From contig OZ287696.1 of NCBI GenBank assembly GCA_965649825.1, positions 1,894,081 to 1,958,080 of the forward strand: a DNA stretch of 64,000 nt, read 5' to 3'. The DNA is from Penicillus capitatus (lineage: Eukaryota > Plantae > Chlorophyta). Both the position numbers and the translations under genes were made by a program. Under the pieces are notes generated by a model. That model was not told the origin of the DNA, did not search any database, and worked only from the letters and a program-made list of their open reading frames with translations. Shown here piece after piece: positions 7,634 to 33,743 of this stretch (its first letter is position 1; each line of letters starts with the position of its first letter).

Positions 7634-8062
7634 TAGCAAGGTTGTTTTTCTACAGAATGCGCCCATTTATATGTAGGATGTGACAAGACCTCACAGATCA
7701 GTTAAGTCGTCCAACACTCAGGTTGATAAGATAGTGCCCCTGACAAGACGTTGAGTGCCTCTTCATGAACAGAACCTCAGAATCGAGCAGATGATGTGAC
7801 TTCCACGCGAGAACATGACACATCGATTCTGTCGCTCTGTTGGCGAACAAACACACATACGCAAAATAAACTTAAAACTGAAATCGTAAACAAGGCAAAT
7901 ATTCTCCCCTTAATAGAGGTTTTGATGTGCATGGCCATTTATAACGCTTCTAGGACGGTCCTCATATAACAATTCGCTGATATATGACTGTTGCTGATGA
8001 ACGCTACTTGTCCTTTGTAAATCTCTGTTCACACTGTTATGTGTGAATGTGTTTCTTAAAAG

Positions 8063-9684: not shown

Positions 9685-10310
9685 TCGGAGTTGACTGACG
9701 AACCATAATCACGCAGCACGATGGATTTCTAGGCAGCAACGAGGCAACTGTCCCGCCCGTCCTCTGGATTTCGCAGCACATAATTCGACGCCGTGCGTTT
9801 CGATGGATGTTATCCGTGGTCTCCCGAACAGCAGAAGTGCTTCATGCAGAAGACGATTCGCGCTGCACCGTCTTCAGCGACTCCGCACACTGCGTTCACA
9901 TCCACCAGTGTAACCTACACGAGGATTCTTCTTTGGCAAGGGATAAGAGAGGAAAGTTTTTTGCAGTCGATGACGAGCGGTACGTTGGCGTCATCATTAC
10001 CTAATACGTTCAGGCAGACAAGCATGGAGTGATCTCCTGCTGGTCTGTAGAGGCACATCTCGACAGTTTATCTGCCGTTCACGCCGTATTCAATTACGTT
10101 GGGCGATGCATTCGTGGTTGGCAGAGCTCCAGCGCGTCTACTCCATGCAATCGATGATGCTTTTTATGACGCAGCCAGGCAGCACTTGGATCATTCGTAT
10201 TCCCGTCCATCCAAACCAGTCGTTAGTCAGACAGCGAGCGGCATCGCCATCAGTCGAATTTCACAACAGTCGTGTGTTCGGAGTATTGGTTTCGCGTTTC
10301 TACCGCATCG

Positions 10311-13385: not shown

Positions 13386-16300
13386 TCACATGTCATGGGA
13401 TCGAGCAGCGTTGGTCGAAGATGTTGTCAACTGAAGCTGGCCTCTGACCTGTCCACCGACAATCTTCCGCACCTTCACTCTTCCCGCCTTGATTTCCTTA
13501 ACGTGTTCTCGAATGTCCTTTGCATTCTGGCTCAGTTTCAGCGGCTCGATGATCACACCTTTACGCGTCACCATCTAAGAACTGAAGATAACGAGGAGAG
13601 AATTAGAATGTCAGATTTACTTTCGGGCGAACAAGATCCTCAAACGCAGCCGTGGTGTTGAAATCTGGCCCAAGCGGATGCCGTATGCTCGCTTGGTAAG
13701 CTTCCACAGACGAGAAAGTGTGCGGGATGCTCGATGCTCTATACTTATCGAGGTGATGGTTTGGCGTCTCACTGATAAAAACAAAAGGCTTCTTGGCATC
13801 TCTCCGTTTCTTGACAGCCTCTTCGCGTTTTCTGGAATGACAAAGCTGAGATAGCCTGCCAGAGATGGAAGATGGAGTGCGACCTTTGGTTCTTGGCCCT
13901 CTGCTCTCCCATCCATCTAGGTTCTTTCTGTTCGTCCTTCCATCGACCCCATCCGGGAAGCAGCGAGATCTCTTTAGCCTTGGGAAGCTCTTGAGCGACT
14001 TCTGCTTCTTTCTCTGCGCGAAACTCATCATGCACATCGTCATCAGCGAATGCCATTTTTATGAGCTCTGCTTGAGATAGCTCTGCTTCTTTTGGCCTAG
14101 CATCTAGCTGGATAACCGACGCTTCTGGTGCAACAGAAGTGGCCGCTTCGTCCTTATGGCCTGTCTCTTGATCCTTATCCGCTGGATCGGCACTAGGAGT
14201 GTCTGCATGTAGCAATGTCTTTTCAATAGTGTCTGCTTCTTCTGGCATCTGCAAGATGACTGTTTTGATGTGACAGATCACACAAAGACATGCACCTGTG
14301 CGGTCTCTTTGTCTGTGCCTTCCTTTGACAGACCTCTGAAAAGGAAAGATCGATGCACGTCCGCGATGCGCGCATTGCTCTTCTTACTGATGCCCTGAAC
14401 AAACAGAACGGTCTCGCCGCCGCACATCTCTCGCGGATAGAAGAGACTTCAGAGGAGATCGTTTGGTCAGTCATAGGGGTGGATGCCTTTTCAGAGTCAC
14501 GGAGACGTTTCTTGGCAACTTTTTTGAGTTTCTCCGATAGGCGGCGGGCTCCGTCCTCTTCAGAATCTGACGACTGCGTGCGTTTCTGGGCCTGTTCTCC
14601 TTCGAACTGCATTCTGGCCTTGCCGATGTTGTCCTCCGTCTCTTTTGTACCGTCGATCTCATGCAGCATCTTCTGTGCCGTTTCCTGCATTTCTGCCTTT
14701 CGTCTCTGCATTGCCTTCTGCATAAAGGGCAGTCCCATCAGCCCCTTCCTGGGCACAGATTCCAGATCTGCTCCGCCGTCCAAGACCTTCAACAGTTCCT
14801 TCCTCGTCTTCCTGTACTGCGCCTCTCCCTCATTGTCCGAACCACTAAAAACAGAGCTCTCACACAAGCGGTATACAAAAAGGCAGCACCTTGACGAGGA
14901 TGCCTCGTCTTCAGACGAGCCAGCCTCTGTCGACTTTATCTTTTGTTTAAGTTCCTGACTCTGACGCAACTGCTCTTCTAGTGCCTGCTTTGTCTGTTCG
15001 TCTGCTACTCCCCATCCTCGTCTCATGATTCTTTTAGCAAATCTGTTCATTGTGCTATGCTTCTGGGTCAATCTCTCTTTCATTCTGCTGTATGACATAT
15101 CTTCCAACAGTTTCCTCGCAGCTTCTTCGCTGCTCAGGCCGCTGAACTTAACAGCCTTCTTTCGGATCGCTCTTTGCAAGCGTCTGTGATATTCCTTGCT
15201 CTTGATCTTCTTGATCCGCCTCGCTTTGATCTCGTGATGAAAGAGTAGAGAACGCATCTTTGCCAGTTGTCCCCGCTTTTTCTTTAGCTCTGCCAAAGTC
15301 ATGGACTTCAGTGCGTGTTCGTCTTCTATCTTAACGATATCCTCTTCGGTGGCTGCGCCAGACGATGCTAGAATGTCTGCCATTTCTCTTTCCATCTGCG
15401 ATTCTGGTTCCAATCCGTCGACCATGTCTTCCAAAGTGTGTGATTTTTCAAGCCCTGCAGATGGCGGGCAGAACTCCAGTGTTGGAGCCATTCGGTTGGC
15501 CTAGAAAGCCAGTAGACAATCATCAGAACACAAGGATGCACAGCAGTGTTCTTACATAAACGAGATCGTCCCACTTCGAAAGACTCTGAACGGCATTTTC
15601 ATAGCCAGCTTTACGAATATGCCGATCCTGAATGCGTTTCGGCAGCGGCACAGCCAACGGTCCCTGTTTTTCCAGCGACTCCAGCGATTTGCGAACGTTC
15701 TTGAGCAACGCAGGCACGGCTGCCATTCCGGCTGTCAAATCTGATATCTGTTCTTTCTGCCCTGGCACGTACATAACCCGTAACCCTCGTTGCAAAGGCA
15801 ACAAGCATCCAAATCATACCTCCTTCATCTACCAACACATGAAAAGCACCCTCAGGTCGCGACTCCGATCGCACTGCCCTTTGCGCTTTCTTGGGACACT
15901 CTCCCAGCACAGCAGACTTTAACTTCCTATCGGCACCATCACAGAGAGCTGTCTCAAGGAAGGGTTACTCTTTCTCCATTGTTTCTTCTTCGATGTCATC
16001 GTCGCCACTGTCAAAGATCTCTTCCAGTTCTTCGTCGCTTCCAAACAGCTCATCCACCTATGCAGAGATTCACAGCAATGGATCATCCATCTGCGAAATC
16101 CACCTCGTCTGGATGATCCACCGTTTGGATGACGTCTGAGTCGACTGGCATGTCGCTATCAAACAGGTGAGAGAACTGTCGAGCGTCCTCTGGTGAGAAA
16201 GCTGTTTCTTCGTCAATCTCTTCATCATCCCCTGCCAGACCCAACTCGAATTCCCCGATCCCTTCGCCCGTCTAACATGTCCCCGGATCAACAAGAGCCG

Positions 16301-16495: not shown

Positions 16496-18216
16496 ATGTC
16501 TAGGGTTTCGCTCAGTCCAACCGCGGGACGTCTTTTTCGGAATGCGGTACCAGGTGCAACGATCCGAGAGGTTGCGCCGATCCGTTCGAGAATCCGAGCC
16601 ACCCGTCGTCGACAGAGTCGCATCGCAGCGCAACAGACAGACGTCCTGCCCGCCTCCGTCGCTGTCCCCAAAGGAAACTGGACAGTCCTCGAACGCGGTG
16701 TCACAGCGCCGGAAGGTTTCCGCGCTGCCGGTTCACACTTTAGACGACGTCTTCGCCACTCAGTCGGAGTTTCTTGTGCTGCAGCTCTTTCGGCCGGACT
16801 GCGCAGCAGTGGGAAGAAACCAGATCTCTCACTCGTTGTGTGCGATGTCCCAGCTGTCGCGGCAGGAGTCTTCACACGAAACGTCCTGACAGCGGCGCCT
16901 GTTATCTACGACAAGAAAGTGCTCGAACGGCATCGTCATATCCGAGGGGTCGATCTCCACGCTCCATGTTATGTAGTATCCAATGAAGTTTCGTTTAGGT
17001 GTTGACAAATGCCGGACAGGCAAATGCCGCAACGGGAGATGACGGGTACCGAGACGCAGAAACATGTGCATCAGCAGTTTCCCGGCAACTTCATGTTGAG
17101 CCAGAGGAGATCTTGGTGATGTCCACTGGCGTCATTGGCCGTCGTATCCAAATGGAACGTCTCTTGGAGCACATACCGAAGCTAACAGAGAGTCTGGAGA
17201 GCGGTGCCAGGATTGATGCCGAGGTCGCAACGGCCATCACCACCACAGGTGCTCTTAAACACGCGCAAATTGTCCCCTCAGAATGGACGTTTTCAGATTT
17301 GGTATACAAAAGTGCAGCACTGGAGTTGGAGATTGATGGGAAAAGAGTGACACTTGGCGGAATGTGTAAAGGATCTGGTATGATCAATCCAAATATGGCA
17401 ACCATGCTTGGACTGTTGACGTGCGATGCCCCGGTCGACGCATCTGTCTGGAGACAAATGTTGTCTCGTGCCATGGACTTGAGTTTTAACAGGGTCACAT
17501 CATCTCCGATCACACTGTTGGATCATAACCGACTGGTTTTGCAGATCTCGGTAGATGGAGACACCAGTACGAATGATACCGTCCTAGCGTTGGCGAGTGG
17601 AAAAGTACCAATGGCTAAAATTTCAGATCCATCCAGCGAAGCAGGACAGAAACTTCAAGAAGCATTGAATGCTCTCTCGCAGGTTTCCTTGTCTCGGAGA
17701 GAGAGATGGGTAACGAGGAGACATGTGATAGGCTCTGGCAAAGTCTGTTGCGTGGGATGGCGAAGGGGCAACCTGTCTGATCGAAGTGGCCGTTTCCGGA
17801 GCTAAGACAGCAGACGATGCATCAACGGTCGCCAAGTCCATAGCCAGCTCCATGTTGACCAAAGCAGCAATTTTTGGGCATGATCCTAATTGGGGAAGAA
17901 TCGCGGCCGCTGCTGGATACGCCGGTGTACCCTTTTCTGTCGAAGAACTGGATATCACACTCGGTGAGATGCCACTGCTGAAAGCAGGCACCCCAGTCGA
18001 CTTCAGTCCATCCGAGGCATCTCGATACTTAGAGGTAGATTCTTGGTCAGTACTCCTTGACAAGGTCTGTCCACGTTTGTGTTCTAGGAGCAATGTGCCA
18101 AACGCGGAACCGTTTTGATTCGTGTTTGTATCGGGACAGGATCTGGAAAAGGAGTGGCCTGGGGATGCGATCTGAGCTATGATTATGTCAAGATCAATGC
18201 GGAATACACGACGTGA
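16496..18216 (+). CDS. argJ: Bifunctional glutamate/ornithine acetyltransferase ArgJ with an organellar (likely plastid) transit peptide
   Basis: [66 protein letters not shown] and terminal [18 protein letters not shown]-stop. S/R/A-rich N-terminal extension. Confidence 0.97.
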
Positions 18217-19114
18217 AGGAAGACGCCGGGATGCATGTAGACCGATAGATTCATGTAATTCGGGAATTGTCATCTGAGATCTCTTAGAACCCCCTCGGCG
18301 GTTTGGGCATCCAATGCGGACAACGTTTCATTCGCTTTTCCTTCAAATCTATTCAGCCAACGATCTCGAATGCGATGCTGCCGCAGTGAAGACGTTTTCG
18401 CGCTCGTAGCACAGTATTGAGTCAATGGAGTGAGTGAAAGGTTTACCGTCAACGACGCCTACTGGCCTGTGCGTTGAGATGCAGAAAACGAAACGTAGAG
18501 TCACGTCGACCGCACGACGATTCCAAACGATGCCTTGCATTGCGACGCACGACTTGTCCCGGATGACGTGACCCGCTTGGCATTGTCTTCATTCGGGTCT
18601 CAAGTGAGAGGAAGGTTGGAACGCCTTGACGATGTAAACGATACAGGCGATATAGGTATCATCGTGAATAGACCCACCTCATAACGATGAAATCGTTGCG
18701 CATTAGAAAGCCATCCACTGCAGGAGATGTAGAAGTCATGTCGCTTGCCGCAGCCATCGAAGACGGTTGGGTCAGCGCAGAACCAACCACCCCTGGTGCT
18801 GACCATTCATTGGTGACGGCAGGTGTCGGACTCCGACCTGGCTTTAAATAACCATCGGGTAATGGATGCGGAACGAGGCCTGGAGTTCGCCGCTGTTAAC
18901 TCTTAAGGTTAGGCAAGCTTCAACCACCGCACGTATTTAAGGACGGCATTCATCCTGTAACCAATCTCGAGTTCCCTGTGTTATCTTCCGAGTGTGTCTT
19001 TATCGTCGTCGTTCCCGTTGAGTCTCGACTTTGAGTTATTCAAACGTTCACACGATTCCCGACACAACTCAAACCATTCACGACCACCATCGCAAATTCT
19101 TTTCTTCAACTGTC

Positions 19115-21239
19115 ATGTCGAGATGTCCTCTTCAGATGCCGTCGTCTATTCGATCGTCGATGTCGACAGACACTGTCGTTCCACGTCGTCACTTGAACGG
19201 CGCCGCCTAAAAAGATCGTGTGTGTGCAGGGGATCAAAGAGAATAGCATCGATGCTTTTCTCGAGGTTTTGCAAAGAGAGAGTGATCAACACCTGCACAT
19301 TCTGCTGAACCTTCCTACGCCAAATTCGTCTGTGCTCGCCTTTCTAACAGCTCTTCAGGATCGACAAACTCTGGATGCAGTGTATCTCGTGGAAACGCCA
19401 TCGTTACAGGGTACGTGCTGACGCCCTCTATTCCGTATAAGTACACGTATCTTTCATCAGTTCCGGTTCGGACCTTGGATGTGGCTGACGTCGTTCAGAG
19501 CGTTTCGCTGACTGCCGCTGCTGGGCGAATGCAGAATGCAGAAGTGGATGTCTTGCTCCTTGAGCCAGATCACGTTGCTGTCAATGGCGATGCGTCTGTT
19601 GATCTGACAGCCTTGGCACTGGCCATGCTTGCCAAAGACGCCAACGTTCCGCTTTACCTCATCACAGACACATCGACCATGAGATGGGATGTCGTTGACG
19701 GTAATGGGATCAGAAAAGACATCACTGCGGATAAGGCCGTGATTTCGGCCGATCTGATCCACGGCATCGTAACGGAACGTGGCATCCTGCATAAGGAAGG
19801 AACCAAATTCGACGTCACATCACTCGACCCATCTGGAAAGGCCAGCAACTCACTTTGCAAGTTTTCGGAGTTTCTGCCCTTGACAGAGCAAACCGCAATC
19901 GAATACATCCAGGCCAATCCATCCTTTGCCAAAAGACTGGGCCCTCCTGGAGTCCAGCTAAAATGCTGGGAAGCAAAAGATGGCAACATTAACTACATAT
20001 ACATCGTGGAGGGTCCAGAAGGTGGACTGGTTATCAAACAGGCGCGTCCATACATTCGCGTCGTCGGCGAATCGTGGCCACTGACACAGGTTTCATTCAT
20101 ACAGATGTCACATCAGAAGGAGATCCGTGTCTATACAGGATCGTCTCCGTATTGAAGGGAATTGGATGAAGGAGCAGAACAAGATCTGTCCACAGTACAT
20201 TCCTGATCTCTATCTGTTGGATGAAACGATGTCCTTGATTGTTATGGAGTATCTGGCGCCGCCCTTCCAGTCGCTCCGTGCAGGTATCTTGGCCGGCAAG
20301 ACTTATCCCATGATGCCGAACCAAGTCGCAGAATTCTTGGCGCAGTCTCTTTTCTTTACCTCTGCCCTGGCTCTGAAATCGGATGTCTACCGAGCGAAGG
20401 TTAAAGAGTTTCATAACCCTGAGCTTTGTCAGGCAACAGAGCAGGTTATTTTTATGGATGCATACTACGATGCACCAACCAATGCTTATCTGAAACCAGA
20501 GTTCGAGCACGCCGCCGCCGATTTGAGAAATGACATCGAAGCCAAAGTCGCCATCGGCCGCCTGCGCAATGCCTTCCTGTCAAAAATGCAAGCCCTGATT
20601 CATTCTGATTTCCACACCGGAAGCGTGATGGTGAAAGAGGACGCCATGGTCGTGTTTGACAGCGAATTTGCATTCTATGGGCCAATGGCATTCGACGTGG
20701 GGAAGTTCATTGGTAACCTGCTGCTAACATTCTTTGCTCTTGATGGCCATTCGACAACGGATCTCCCCCGAGAAGAGCAGCAAGAATGGATCCTTGATAG
20801 CGTCATCCAAGTGTGTTCCGTCTGTCGAAGGACTGATGTTAGTCTTTTGAATGGTCTTCAGATCTGGGAAGGATTTCGCAGGAACTTCTTGCAACTGTGG
20901 AATGATCATTTGGGGATGGGCGATGCCTATCCCAATCCGTTGATCCAACATCCGGAGAAAGCTCTGTCGGCAATCCAAGCAGACTTCATGGATCGTCTTT
21001 TTCATGAGGCTCTTGGATTTGCAGCTGCCTGTATGATTCGCAGAATTGTGACCATCGCGCAGATTGCAGATTACACGACGATTCAGAACAGAACTGTCAG
21101 AACCGTCTGTTCAGAACGGGCTTTGAAATTTGCCAGGAGACTTCTTGTGAACGCAATGGACAAGAACGCATTCCCAGATATCCACAAAGTCATTCAAGAG
21201 GCGAAGAAAATCCAGAAGAACCCTTTCGAAACTGTCTAA
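19115..21239 (+). CDS. MTK1: 5-methylthioribose kinase (MtnK/MTK) with a fused N-terminal degenerate MTR-1-P isomerase (MtnA/eIF2B-alpha-like) domain; start approximate
   Basis: Kinase motifs DGNINYIYIV, VIKQARPYIRVVGESWPLT, QALIHSDFHTGS, VFDSEFAFYGPMAFDVG. The same uninterrupted ORF (19415-20155) carries upstream VDVLLLEPDHVAVNGD...AMLAKDANVPLYL...ADLIHGIVTERGIL, matching the MtnA C-terminal pattern. Confidence 0.92.
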
Positions 21240-21298: not shown

Positions 21299-23323
21299 TC
21301 AGTTGATGTAATCTCTCACTGTTTCTTCCTTGCTCTTGCTTCCTAACCAACCGAACAAGCTTGTCGTATTGCCCTTTGATCGTGCATCGTTGGATGCTGT
21401 CGTCGGCAACATAGATGATGGTGATGGTGTGCCAGATTCGGCCAGCCGATGACGAACATCTCTTTGGATGTGCATTTCCAGAATCTGCGTCTGACTCGAC
21501 ACCTTCTGCACCAGTGCGTGGTTCTCCGTCTTGAGCTTCGAAATCTCGAGCTGAAGCGACACACAAATTGTCATCCTGCGAAGTCGATCCATCTGCTTTG
21601 TGTGACCTTTGCCGATCGGAGTCTCGCAATCATCGCTTTTCGTTGATCGTCCAACGCATCGATCAGTTCATGAACGGATGTCAAAACCGCATTCTCTTCA
21701 GGCGACAGCTGTGAAGCTTCGCTCGAGACAAGACTCTCCAAGATCGCTGCATCAGAGAGAAGAGACGCATCGTGACCGCCTGTACCGTACGGACGCCTCA
21801 TGTATGCGCCAGAAGGAAGCACAGAGTTTACGTTCGATGGCATGTTCAGGTGTCGATGGCTGCACGATCTCCTCCGGCACATCCACTTGAATACCGACAT
21901 CTATCATACGGGCCGAAAGTGGTGCCGCTGTTGCAGGCATCGGTCCATTTTTATGGTCTAGAATGCCAGGTCGATGATCTGTGTATGAAGCTGGGACATG
22001 CATCTGCGCACGAAGGACATTGTTCTCTTCTCGGATGTTGTTCAAGATGTCCGTCAGACTTCGATTCTCGTTCTCGGCTTTCCGTTCCTGCTTCTTCAAC
22101 ACATCGACCTCTTCCTTTAATCTCTCTACTGCCTTCTCGAACCGAATCTCAGAAACGCGCATATCTCTCAAACGCTCCTCCAAGGAAACGGTCTCTTGCA
22201 CGAGTTCCTATCCGACAAAGAGAGGACACGGTGGTCCAGGTGTCGACACCATCTCTTACCTTCACTCGATCCTGTGCACCTTGTTCGGTGGCTCTGCTCT
22301 GTTCATAAGTCCGCTGCAGAGATTCAAAGAGCAGTAGATGTTCCTAGAGAACAGACCAGCACTCGCTATCTTTGTTCGGTTTTGAGGAGACCCGACTGAA
22401 AGGCGCGATTCATAGTTGTCGCATTTCTCCAGCGCCTCTTCAAGTTTCTTCGCTTGGATGTTGTACTCGTCCCCGAGAGTCTGATTTTCGCTTGTCAGAT
22501 TCGCCGTCAGTCTCTGCTGCAACTCCAAAGCACGTTTCAAATCGCAGTTCTCTTCGGTCAGACGATTAATGTGTTCTTGCAGTGCAGAGAAATTAGATTT
22601 CCTAAAAACAGCAGGCATTCGACAGGGTCATCCGTGAGCATATCGATTGCCACCGCTCCACTCGGTCGACAAACCGTACGGCAAGGGCATTCTCTGAACC
22701 GTGCGCCGATGCGATCTCAGAAACAGCTTGCTTTTCGTCAACCTGCTTCTCTTCTGCCGCTCTTTGTCGGACATCACTGTGGATCCCCTTCTGATCGCGC
22801 TCTCTTGTACCAGACACCTCGGCGAGTGGTTGCTTGACAGTATCCTCGACAGGGATGCTCTGTTCAAAAGCATAGGTCATCTGTTCGGCCATTAACGGCC
22901 GAGCACGGGCGTCGGTTTCGACGGGCATGTGAACGAGGCTGTCCAGCAGATCCGCACCGATCTCTTCTCTTTCGGCGGATAGCTTCTCACTCTCCATCCT
23001 CTCCAACTGAAACGCCGCCTCCATATGGGGTGCTCCTGTTTCGCAAAGGAACGCCTCTGGTCCGGCCATGTAACGCTGGAATGCATCCAGTCCTTTTCTC
23101 AAGTGGTTTTCATTGCCAGCATCCCTGCAGACACTGCACCGTCAGCAGCGCTGTCGTCTTTACAGAAGGATGAGGTCACTCGTGGCGTAGGGATGATAAT
23201 GTGTGACGCTCGGCAAACTACAGAAGCATGTTGTGAGGTGCCCACACGTGTGTATTCAATACTCGCGACACTTACCAATCGCCGACCGCAGTTCAGATAA
23301 GTCTGATAGACGGACGTCTCCAT
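21299..23323 (-). CDS. BLISTER-like coiled-coil protein
   Basis: NFSALQEHINRLTEENCDLKRALELQQRLTANLTSENQTLGDEYNIQ resembles plant BLISTER (DFAALEQHIEDLTQEKFSLQRALE...LASEN...YNQQ). C-terminal ISKLKTENHALVQKVSSQTQILEM also fits. Comparison is from memory. Confidence 0.65.
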
Positions 23324-31477: not shown

Positions 31478-32427
31478 GACGCAAGAATGACGCTCTTGTG
31501 ACGATGCGTTCGTACGTGAAGCGTTCAGTGTACGGTGAATGAACAGTTTTGTCACAAACGTGTCATGATTGTACTGCCTTTTGGCCTTTCGTCTATTCTA
31601 CTGTCCTGACAGGACTGTTGGTTGGTGTACACAATTGAGAGAGGACGTTTATCAGGAAGTCATGATAGTTGCCGAATACCGACCGCAATACCACATAGGC
31701 AGGTACACAGCACAACGAGCAAATGCATCTCATTTATCGAATCTTTGCGTTATCTGCGTTCATCCACTGCTTCCTTTAACCCGCGTTTCCTAGATTGGCC
31801 AAGATTAAGTTGCTTAACCCCCTTGACCTCAAATGAAGGATGTGTAGTTTCAATCTTCATTTCCACCGCTTGGTCATTGTCACATCCCCCACCAGTCATG
31901 CGCTTCCCTCATAAATGAAAAATAAAAAAGTGTTCTGCAGCGAGATGGAACACATCTTTCTTTTTTTGCTTTCTTGAGAGTGGAATGACTGACGAGAGAG
32001 ATTGTCCCGTCGCAAACCCTTGAAGCCACAGCTGATCTGCAATTGATTGAACAGATCTGCTGTTCAGTCGCCTTGCCTTTCATTCATATCATATCAGGAA
32101 GAACAGTACCCAATCATGCGTGTCATGTATATAGAGAAATGAACACACCAGGACTTCCGATTCTGGGAACCAAAGCAACCCTTTTTATCTTTCCGTGTAT
32201 CAGTGTTGCGGTAAAAGAGGGTGGACACACGCAGAACGTGTAAAAATATGTGAGTACCAGCAACAAATCAATGTTCTTATCTGCCTAACTTCACACATCT
32301 TTGAATTTGACTTCCTTCGCAAAAATAAAAGAGAAATAAAAGAAAAGAGAGACATTCCTTCTTCAGCCAGATGGCTTATACCCCCTGCTGAAAGACCAGG
32401 ATGTGCACAAACAAAGAAATTCGCCGC

Positions 32428-33743
32428 TTAGACGGGCGCCGGATACGCTTCCACGGATGCTGCCGTTGCTGTCGAAGGCAATACGACCTGTTCAAACAAT
32501 CCAAGTCCCAATCTCTGTTGCTGTTTCTTCAGATGTCTGCTCAGAAAAGGATGATTCAGAGCAGACTCTGCTGTCAAACGTGTGGCGTAGTTCGGATTCA
32601 AGAGTCCCTTCACAAACTCCACACATTCAGGACTCACTCGGCACCAGGGTTCGGAGCTGAAGTCTGGGGTAGTGTAGATGACGCCCTTGAGCACATCTTT
32701 CTCAGACTTGAGTCGCGATTCTTCATAACTGTCCCAGAAGGGAAGTCGTCCAGTCATGAGACGATAGAGCATAACACCCAGACTCCACATATCAGCCTCC
32801 GTGTGATAACTGCCAGCAAAGACCTCTGGTGCCCAGTGTGTAGGTGTCCCTACTTTATTCGAACACCGACCTTTCCCTGTATACTGACTCGTGCCAAAGT
32901 CGATGCCTTTCAGCCAACCACTCGGCAGCAGATTGGTTCCGTGCTTGAACATGTGATACTCGACGCGATTGGCAACAACAAAGTTTGCTGCCTTCACATC
33001 ACCATGTACAATTTTCTTTGCATGGCACTCCGATAACATCCTCAGTGCCTCGACGGCTACCATTGCAAGTTGGCGCTCGTTCAGTGGCCCATTCGTCTAA
33101 CAGCAGCACCACCATTTAATCTCATTTCTGGCAAAAGAGTGAGACAGCAAGCAGGTCATACTTTCAGGTAGCTTTCGAGATCCCCGCCCTTGCAGAGTTC
33201 CGTCACGATGTACATCTTGTCTTCCAGTTGATAGGATCCTTGGAGTTGCACAACCGAATCACATCCTCTGAGATCATCGAGTACATCGATCTCGCGCTGT
33301 ATCTTACAATCAGAGAGTACGCAGCAACCGTCGCCACGGCGCACTTCTTTAATCGCCACTTCGCGTCCAGTCGAAATTTCCGTCGCGTTATAGACTGTAC
33401 CGTAGGAGCCGCGACCCAGTTCGCCCTTAATCTCATAACGCGAACCGATCGGGTCCTTCGGCTCAACGAACACAGGTTCGGCATGAGTGACGTCCAGCTC
33501 GACTTCATCTTCCTGTTTCTTCGGCGCAAAAACTTCGTCCCACGGTATCTGACGGTTCGGAGGCGAGACGAGGCGAGGCAGTCCAGCTCGAAGAATGGAG
33601 CCAACGTTCACGGGGTCTGGTTTCTTCACGGTGCCCACAAATCGCGTTTTGGTTGCTTCGCGTCCACCCTGCACGGTTGTCGTGCCGCTCTGTGCAGAGG
33701 CGGAGGTCGCCACAGGTACGCGCATGCATGAAAGACTCAGCAT
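32428..33743 (-). CDS. CDPK/CaMK-like Ser/Thr protein kinase without a calmodulin-like domain
   Basis: YEIKGELGRGSYG, VAIK, VTELCKGGDL, HGDVKAANF, IDFG, VGTPTHWAPEV, ADMWSLGV, RLTAESALNHPF; short tail then stop. Confidence 0.9.

Follow-up and report, generated by a model that had tools for sequence, protein, structure and literature searches.

A degenerate MtnA-like domain fused to an S-methyl-5-thioribose kinase in Penicillus capitatus

MtnA-MtnK is a textbook-style fusion of consecutive pathway enzymes: An N-terminal S-methyl-5-thioribose-1-phosphate (MTR-1-P) isomerase and a C-terminal S-methyl-5-thioribose (MTR) kinase are joined in one polypeptide. The mtnAK fusion of Tetrahymena thermophila (XP_001031773, 779 aa) carries MtnA at its N-terminus and MtnK at its C-terminus, and the report describing it also noted mtnAK for Ostreococcus, Micromonas and Phaeodactylum (Salim et al., 2009, PMC2759508). 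It is mentioned in another report, too (PMC6302742). A gene of related architecture is located in a 64-kb stretch of the Penicillus capitatus contig OZ287696.1 (positions 1,894,081 to 1,958,080 of the forward strand). This whole stretch is called the window below, and coordinates are positions within it. A first-pass annotation had reported an MtnA-like segment with degenerate motifs in frame with an MTR kinase, had correctly pointed to the Tetrahymena fusion, and had explained the isomerase half as a retained pseudoenzyme. The observation is confirmed, the interpretation partly supported by the analysis described here.

Full MtnA-MtnK fusions are widespread in green algae. Proteins of 744-877 aa (~800 aa) that combine PF01008 and PF01636 are found in Bryopsis, Ulva, Chlorella, Volvox, Chlamydomonas, Astrephomene and Pleodorina as well as in many metagenomic sequences. 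The window protein comprises 639 aa, encoded by a reconstructed five-exon gene at 19115-21239 on the + strand. Like the fusions, it has an MtnA-derived N-terminus followed by MtnK. In contrast to them, it lacks the MtnA N-terminal domain, and its halves are not both complete, as a conversion of MTR to MTRu-1-P by one protein would demand. An orthologous locus in a European Nucleotide Archive (ENA) metagenome assembly (ERZ26696514; L001 in the following) encodes a protein 75% identical to that of the window. In both cases, ArgJ is encoded directly upstream. This syntenic orthologue served as reference for the gene model.

The MtnA-like stub and the kinase half

That the MtnA-like segment and the kinase are fused does not depend on the splice model, as the first-pass annotation had stated, because the open reading frame (ORF) 19415-20155 contains no stop between both parts. 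It holds ...LLLEPDHVAVNGDASVDLTALALAML...LIHGIVTERGIL... and then the kinase N-lobe with DGNINYIYIVEGP...VIKQA...GESWPLTQ.

Residues ~220-625 have the hallmarks of a canonical, intact S-methyl-5-thioribose kinase (MtnK, EC 2.7.1.100), judged by profile matches and a predicted structure. They reach 412.2 bits with TIGR01767 (cutoff 275) and cover model positions 3-400 of 401. The DGN(I/L)N G-loop, the Lys of (V/L)KQA, GESWPL, the HxDxH loop and the DxE Mg site are present. All columns invariant among 52 MtnK sequences (window included) are kept, i.e. D254-N258 of the G-loop, K273, G283-W286 (GESW), H445/D447/H449 and D464/E466. In the AlphaFold model of the whole protein, the mean predicted local distance difference test score (pLDDT) is 89, and Foldseek superimposes the kinase on Arabidopsis MTK (2pyw_A) with E 3.9e-40, a TMt of 0.96 and a root-mean-square deviation of 1.3. 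By the TIGR01767 equivalog cutoff, the invariant residues and the fold, this half resembles stand-alone MtnK/MTK from Arabidopsis (2pyw) and B. subtilis (2pul). Unlike these, it bears an N-terminal extension of ~200 aa that is unavoidable in translation.

For this extension, the stub, both sequence comparisons and predicted models point clearly to a derivation from MtnA, with a similarity beyond chance. TIGR00512, PF01008 and Foldseek all lead to MtnA. The lack of any HMM or structural match, named in the first-pass annotation as a refutation of its reading, is thus not the case. Alone (residues 21-200), the stub matches TIGR00512 with 43 bits and E 2.2e-11 at model positions 173-286 of 335. 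It stays below the MtnA cutoffs, with 38-43 bits for both TIGR00512 (cutoff 279) and NF004326 (cutoff 271). PF01008 scores 26.6 bits with the isolated domain (cutoff 22.4) and 21.0 bits with the whole protein. Among PDB sequences, phmmer found only eIF2B-alpha and MtnA/M1Pi entries, including one that bears the deposited name initiation factor 2B. A domain-only AlphaFold model has a pLDDT of 85.5 and a predicted template modelling score (pTM) of 0.85. Its best Foldseek match is B. subtilis MtnA (2yvk_A, E 8.6e-13, TMq 0.69), while 2a0u yields a TMq of 0.77-0.79. The top matches are 2yvk, 6a34, 2a0u and 1t9k; by rank, B. subtilis MtnA is followed by P. horikoshii MtnA, by MtnA-type structures from Leishmania and T. 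maritima, and then by eIF2B subunits. With eIF2B alpha, beta and delta, the stub shares a PF01008 fold without catalytic Cys, and like them it would be a non-catalytic descendant of the sugar-phosphate isomerase fold (PMC5789824). However, these subunits retain both the N-terminal domain and a sugar-phosphate pocket and lack a fused kinase, and the stub is nearer to MtnA, to which its top matches in NCBIfam, the PDB and Foldseek belong. Membership among the eIF2B subunits does not fit a protein without N-terminal domain either.

The stub corresponds to the compact C-terminal Rossmann-like domain of MtnA only (~180 aa). Alignments to 18-25 canonical full-length fusions bear out every degenerate motif read in the first-pass annotation. 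T(H/I)CNTG is replaced by LNLPTP, whereby the catalytic Cys corresponds to Leu48 (nt 19311-19313) in the window and in L001. ETRPYNQGxRLTA reads ETPSLQ plus a deletion, ANKIGT reads SVDLTA, and GADR reads EPDH with the catalytic Asp retained as D117 (nt 19568-19570). The segments IEER and WNPxFDVTP are deleted. NGD, the helix following it and GIVTERG are retained. Of 105 highly conserved MtnA columns, the stub retains 29 and has gaps in 32. Both orthologues have the internal deletions and the Cys to Leu exchange in common, and these fall within uninterrupted exons. Compared with MtnA/MRI1/M1Pi proteins (2yvk, yeast Ypr118w 1w2w, human MRDI 4ldq), the C-terminal fold, the catalytic Asp, NGD and GI(V/I)TE(K/R)G are common, whereas the N-terminal domain, the catalytic Cys, ETRPxxQG, ANKIGT, IEER and WNPxFDVTP are missing from the stub, and 43 bits stand against 279.

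The absence of RGAP had been noted before and is confirmed; the loss extends to the entire N-terminal domain, a step that had not been taken in that reading. Neither tblastn nor a hidden Markov model (HMM) built from 25 fusion halves detected this helical domain (~150 aa, with RGAPAIG and SRPTAVN) in any of six frames of the 64-kb window and of 21.6 kb of L001. The best HMM match, at 31989-32240 (E 0.25), was rejected as noise. It adjoins an unrelated gene at 32428-33743 on the - strand, whose ORFs contain Ser/Thr protein kinase motifs.

The divergence of the two halves differs. To canonical MtnA C-domains, the stub, with its three internal deletions, is 26-29% identical, compared to 57-69% for canonical C-domains among themselves. 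The window's kinase is 43-46% identical to the kinase of green-algal fusions, compared to 48-54% for the canonical ones among themselves. In canonical fusions, the C-domain is more conserved than the kinase. This order is reversed in the window, which means that the acceleration is specific to the MtnA domain.

The catalytic residues of B. subtilis MtnA are reportedly C160 (in T(H/I)CNTG) and D240 (in GADR) (Tamura et al., 2008). A Cys/Asp pair is backed by the sister isomerase R15Pi, in which it is essential and a Cys to Ser exchange abolishes catalysis (PMC5789824). Two arginines of the N-domain of R15Pi hold the 1-phosphate together with Gln and Lys (PMC5789824). The equivalents of the phosphate-binding Gln and Lys are gone from the stub, and so is the binding Asn. 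In agreement with the earlier view of the isomerase half as a pseudoenzyme, isomerase activity of the stub appears very unlikely, because the N-terminal domain, the Cys and the binding Gln, Asn and Lys are lost and in R15Pi mutation of the Cys alone suffices to abolish catalysis.

Despite this decay, the stub amino-acid sequence is under purifying selection and moderately constrained. Between the window and L001, 56 of 402 nonsynonymous and 44 of 138 synonymous sites are changed. The ratio of nonsynonymous to synonymous substitution rates (dN/dS) amounts to 0.369 at a dS of about 0.42, and neutrality is rejected with p=7e-6. For the kinase, dN/dS is 0.145, i.e. selection on the stub is 2.5-fold more relaxed, and the difference in dN between both parts has p=6e-6. 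Exon 2 and the stub part of exon 3 display neither stops nor indels, although indels occur in three of the four introns. The pLDDT of the stub is mostly 80-97 and about 90-97 in its exon 3 part. In both orthologues, no Met occurs between residues 154 and 300. Therefore, a product with the kinase G-loop and catalytic Lys has to be initiated within or upstream of the stub. Since the kinase cannot be made otherwise, the stub is translated.

Relatives and the series from fusion to separate kinase

A second related locus (L002) was found on a Logan contig (SRR33785045) with Utp14 nearby. Across the kinase-domain columns, it is 57% identical to the window. In the 14.7 kb of L002, no MtnA-like sequence was detected; the kinase begins just ahead of the kinase domain. 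The gene model of Caulerpa lentillifera (424 aa) comprises a kinase only. A neighbour-joining tree of the kinase domain places L002 as sister to the window plus L001, with Caulerpa lentillifera next and all of them in a group with Ulva and Bryopsis. Accordingly, the window most probably stems from an ulvophycean green alga similar to Bryopsidales. One clade comprises three states: the full fusion (Bryopsis, Ulva), stub plus kinase (window, L001) and kinase alone (L002, Caulerpa). Because L002 and the Caulerpa model lack the domain, the stub is dispensable for the kinase within this clade and resembles a stage of decay. This clade offers a natural series to study how fused enzymes separate and whether dead domains stay for structural reasons.

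Immediately 5' of the L002 kinase start, at 7940-8010 and in the same frame, the sequence FVSRRNVLQDPGSKRMV has a weak likeness to IVTERGILHKEGTKFDV of the window. It may be the last vestige of an MtnA C-terminus, a likeness too weak to call.

Stub carriers are known from two to three assemblies. Beyond the window, the L001 cluster is the sole carrier seen in these searches. An exhaustive phmmer search of 1.84 billion representatives for further carriers yielded just the window's own ORF and 18 weak matches of MtnA size, and a word-indexed search returned nothing besides the window's ORF. In L001, introns 1 (9950-10006) and 2 (10188-10241) are in frame and free of stops. The database protein P0001 contains an 18-aa Cys-rich insert, because a prokaryote-style gene caller read through intron 2 of L001. 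Database entries like this one call for caution.

Origin and role of the stub

The stub is probably a catalytically dead isomerase relic of mtnAK that an active MTR kinase has kept as a folded appendage, and would thus be an intermediate on the way from the fusion to its loss. The ancestor would have been a green-algal mtnAK fusion with MTR-1-P isomerase at the N-terminus and MTR kinase at the C-terminus. Within this lineage of Ulvophyceae, its isomerase half has decayed: The N-terminal domain is deleted, and the Cys and most substrate-binding motifs are lost. According to its sequence, the present protein would act as MTR kinase only (MTR + ATP -> MTR-1-P), and the stub would be made along with the kinase as a catalytically dead pseudo-domain, moderately constrained as a structural appendage. 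PF01008 proteins (MtnA, eIF2B alpha/beta/delta) dimerise via their C-terminal domains. Plausible roles of the stub might be such dimer contacts of a PF01008-type C-domain, or a contribution to folding, solubility or stability of the kinase. Isomerisation of MTR-1-P would be performed by a separate MtnA encoded elsewhere; such a stand-alone enzyme, predicted in the first-pass annotation too, is expected, because MTR-1-P would otherwise be a dead end. With the Bryopsis MtnA half as query for stand-alone MtnA, at least 120 matches were obtained, and among the matches listed almost all were land-plant MtnA. The kinase-only relatives could mark the final stage of this decay. The fusion itself is known; its decayed-stub form shows it in the course of losing a half and does not constitute a novel type of system or mechanism. 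Automated annotation would name the protein bifunctional due to the weak IF-2B match or overlook the stub. It should not be entered as an isomerase in metabolic reconstructions of these algae.

Several points weigh against this reading. A dN/dS of 0.37 from two genomes might also point to a real new function and not just to foldability. A structural or dimerisation role of the stub is one that we only infer. Canonical MtnA sequences were part of the alignments for the AlphaFold2 (AF2) models, by which the predicted fold is biased toward MtnA. The kinase-only Caulerpa gene model could be truncated. Finally, exon 1 and the splice sites were deduced from a single orthologue.

The most probable of the rival readings is itself unlikely: The stub might be a neofunctionalised pseudoenzyme that regulates the kinase allosterically or docks free MtnA via its PF01008 C-domain surface, so that channelling of MTR-1-P is kept. 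A selection significantly below neutrality, the confident fold, the retention of GIVTERG, NGD and the following helix, and the established dimerisation of PF01008 proteins by their C-terminal domains would suit such a role. By contrast, the 2.5-fold relaxation relative to the kinase, close relatives without the domain and the loss of the canonical pocket residues argue against it, and no partner was identified. Slightly less probable still is the specific idea that the dimer surface of the stub tethers the kinase to free MtnA or to itself, preserving channelling or regulation of the first committed steps in salvage after the isomerase moved to another gene. If true, a fusion would have been resolved to a non-covalent complex by a dead-domain adaptor. 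Concerning the pseudoenzyme proposed at first, purifying selection makes its retention reasonable, but nearly all residues of the canonical pocket are lost, which speaks against an eIF2B-like sensing of metabolites there.

In the opposite direction, the stub might be decaying neutrally, its apparent constraint merely reflecting the open frame that the kinase needs. With no internal Met up to residue 300, stops and frameshifts would be purged anyway by selection on the kinase; moreover, the stub evolves faster than the kinase, and relatives lost it. However, an open frame does not lower dN/dS. Missense changes are under-represented (p=7e-6), and the predicted fold is compact, which renders mere drag-along improbable.

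A further reading attributes the incomplete domain to the gene model or the assembly: The MtnA half would be complete and active, with N-terminal exons elsewhere or missed. The short, deduced exon 1 and the 74% conservation of the upstream stretch 18101-18719 in L001 would leave room for this. Against it, neither HMM nor tblastn searches of the window and L001 found anything past the stub, both genomes have ArgJ directly upstream, and the deletions and the Cys to Leu exchange are situated inside uninterrupted exons of both. An artefact is, hence, rated as very improbable.

That the stub still isomerises MTR-1-P or another sugar phosphate by a non-canonical mechanism is scarcely credible: D117 and NGD are kept, but the stub lacks the N-terminal domain with its phosphate-binding arginines, the Cys, the Gln in ETRPxxQG and Asn-Lys in ANKIGT, and Cys loss alone ends catalysis in R15Pi (PMC5789824).

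Gene model and neighbouring genes

In comparison with L001, the exons of the stub-kinase gene are 77-88% identical with a sole indel of 3 nt in the linker, and the introns are 55-72% identical. Exon 1 (19115-19174) encodes the 20-aa leader MSRCPLQMPSSIRSSMSTDT, which is predicted to be disordered (pLDDT <50). Its ATG and frame are kept in L001, with synonymous changes at third positions. Its donor site is deduced from the sequence. The start at 19115, already proposed in the first-pass annotation, is supported by this comparison; the gene runs past the end given there to the stop at 21239. An alternative exon 1 starting with the ATG at 19123 (MSSSDAVVYSIVD) was used in the first HMM scans and dropped, as it has 5/13 identity to L001. 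The ATG at 19115 is preferred because its frame yields 13/21 identity and synonymous differences. The choice between the two starts leaves the domain results unchanged.

Intron 1 (19175-19229, GT..AG, 55 nt) is a deduced one, too. The unspliced frame meets a TAA at 19208, and the alignment with L001 displays a 5-nt indel and just 55% identity. Exon 2 (19230-19410) encodes residues 21-81, with which the MtnA-like relic opens and among which Leu48 is found, as placed by alignments, and is 80% identical to L001 at the nucleotide level without indels. Intron 2 (19411-19460, GTACGT..CAG, 50 nt) has 4 indel positions and 61% identity. As the frame changes from exon 2 to exon 3, this intron is required.

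Exon 3 (19461-20089) comprises three parts. The first (19461-19819) encodes the remainder of the relic (residues 81-200), delimited by sequence matches and alignments. The second (19820-19876) encodes the inter-domain linker (residues ~201-219) with a low pLDDT of 60-64 that drops below 50 at residues 208-213. The third (19877-20089) is the start of the MTR kinase domain with the G-loop DGNIN at residue 254, Lys273 and GESWPL; here, the TIGR01767 match begins. Intron 3 (20090-20138, 49 nt) is recognized by a frame change and a net 5-nt length difference to L001 (-4/+9 indels). Exon 4 (20139-20810) contains the kinase core with the catalytic loop IHSDFHTGS (444-452) and the DxE motif FDSEFAFYGP (463-472). 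Intron 4 (20811-20861, 51 nt) is in frame in the window, and homologues have no residues here. Its counterpart in L001 comprises an in-frame TGA, at which P0001 stops. Exon 5 (20862-21239) encodes the C-terminal helical part of the kinase and ends with a TAA stop. GT..AG introns of ~50 nt break up the genes of the window in general, which, together with a GC content of about 50%, lends it a eukaryotic character.

The gene directly upstream, at 16496-18217 on the + strand, is an intron-containing argJ gene for a glutamate N-acetyltransferase (PF01960 in L001). Further upstream, a Lys/Glu-rich gene is located in several ORF pieces at 13603-15491 on the - strand and matches the syntenic Utp14 (PF04615) genes of L001 and L002. 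The strong negative GC and AT skew in the 14-16 kb bin is due to this Utp14-like gene. L001 has the same gene order, Utp14(-)/ArgJ(+)/stub-kinase(+). The stretch 18101-18719 aligns to L001 9212-9837 at 74%, rather high for an intergenic or untranslated region, whereas the next ~330 nt (18720-19050), between ArgJ and the stub-kinase gene, have no counterpart in L001. Neither an ORF nor an MtnA signal was found there. Tandem repeats were not found in the 64-kb window. Directly downstream, at 21299-23102 on the - strand, ORFs such as 21752-22201 and 22262-22618 encode heptad-like, charged sequences of the coiled-coil type and probably form one spliced gene.

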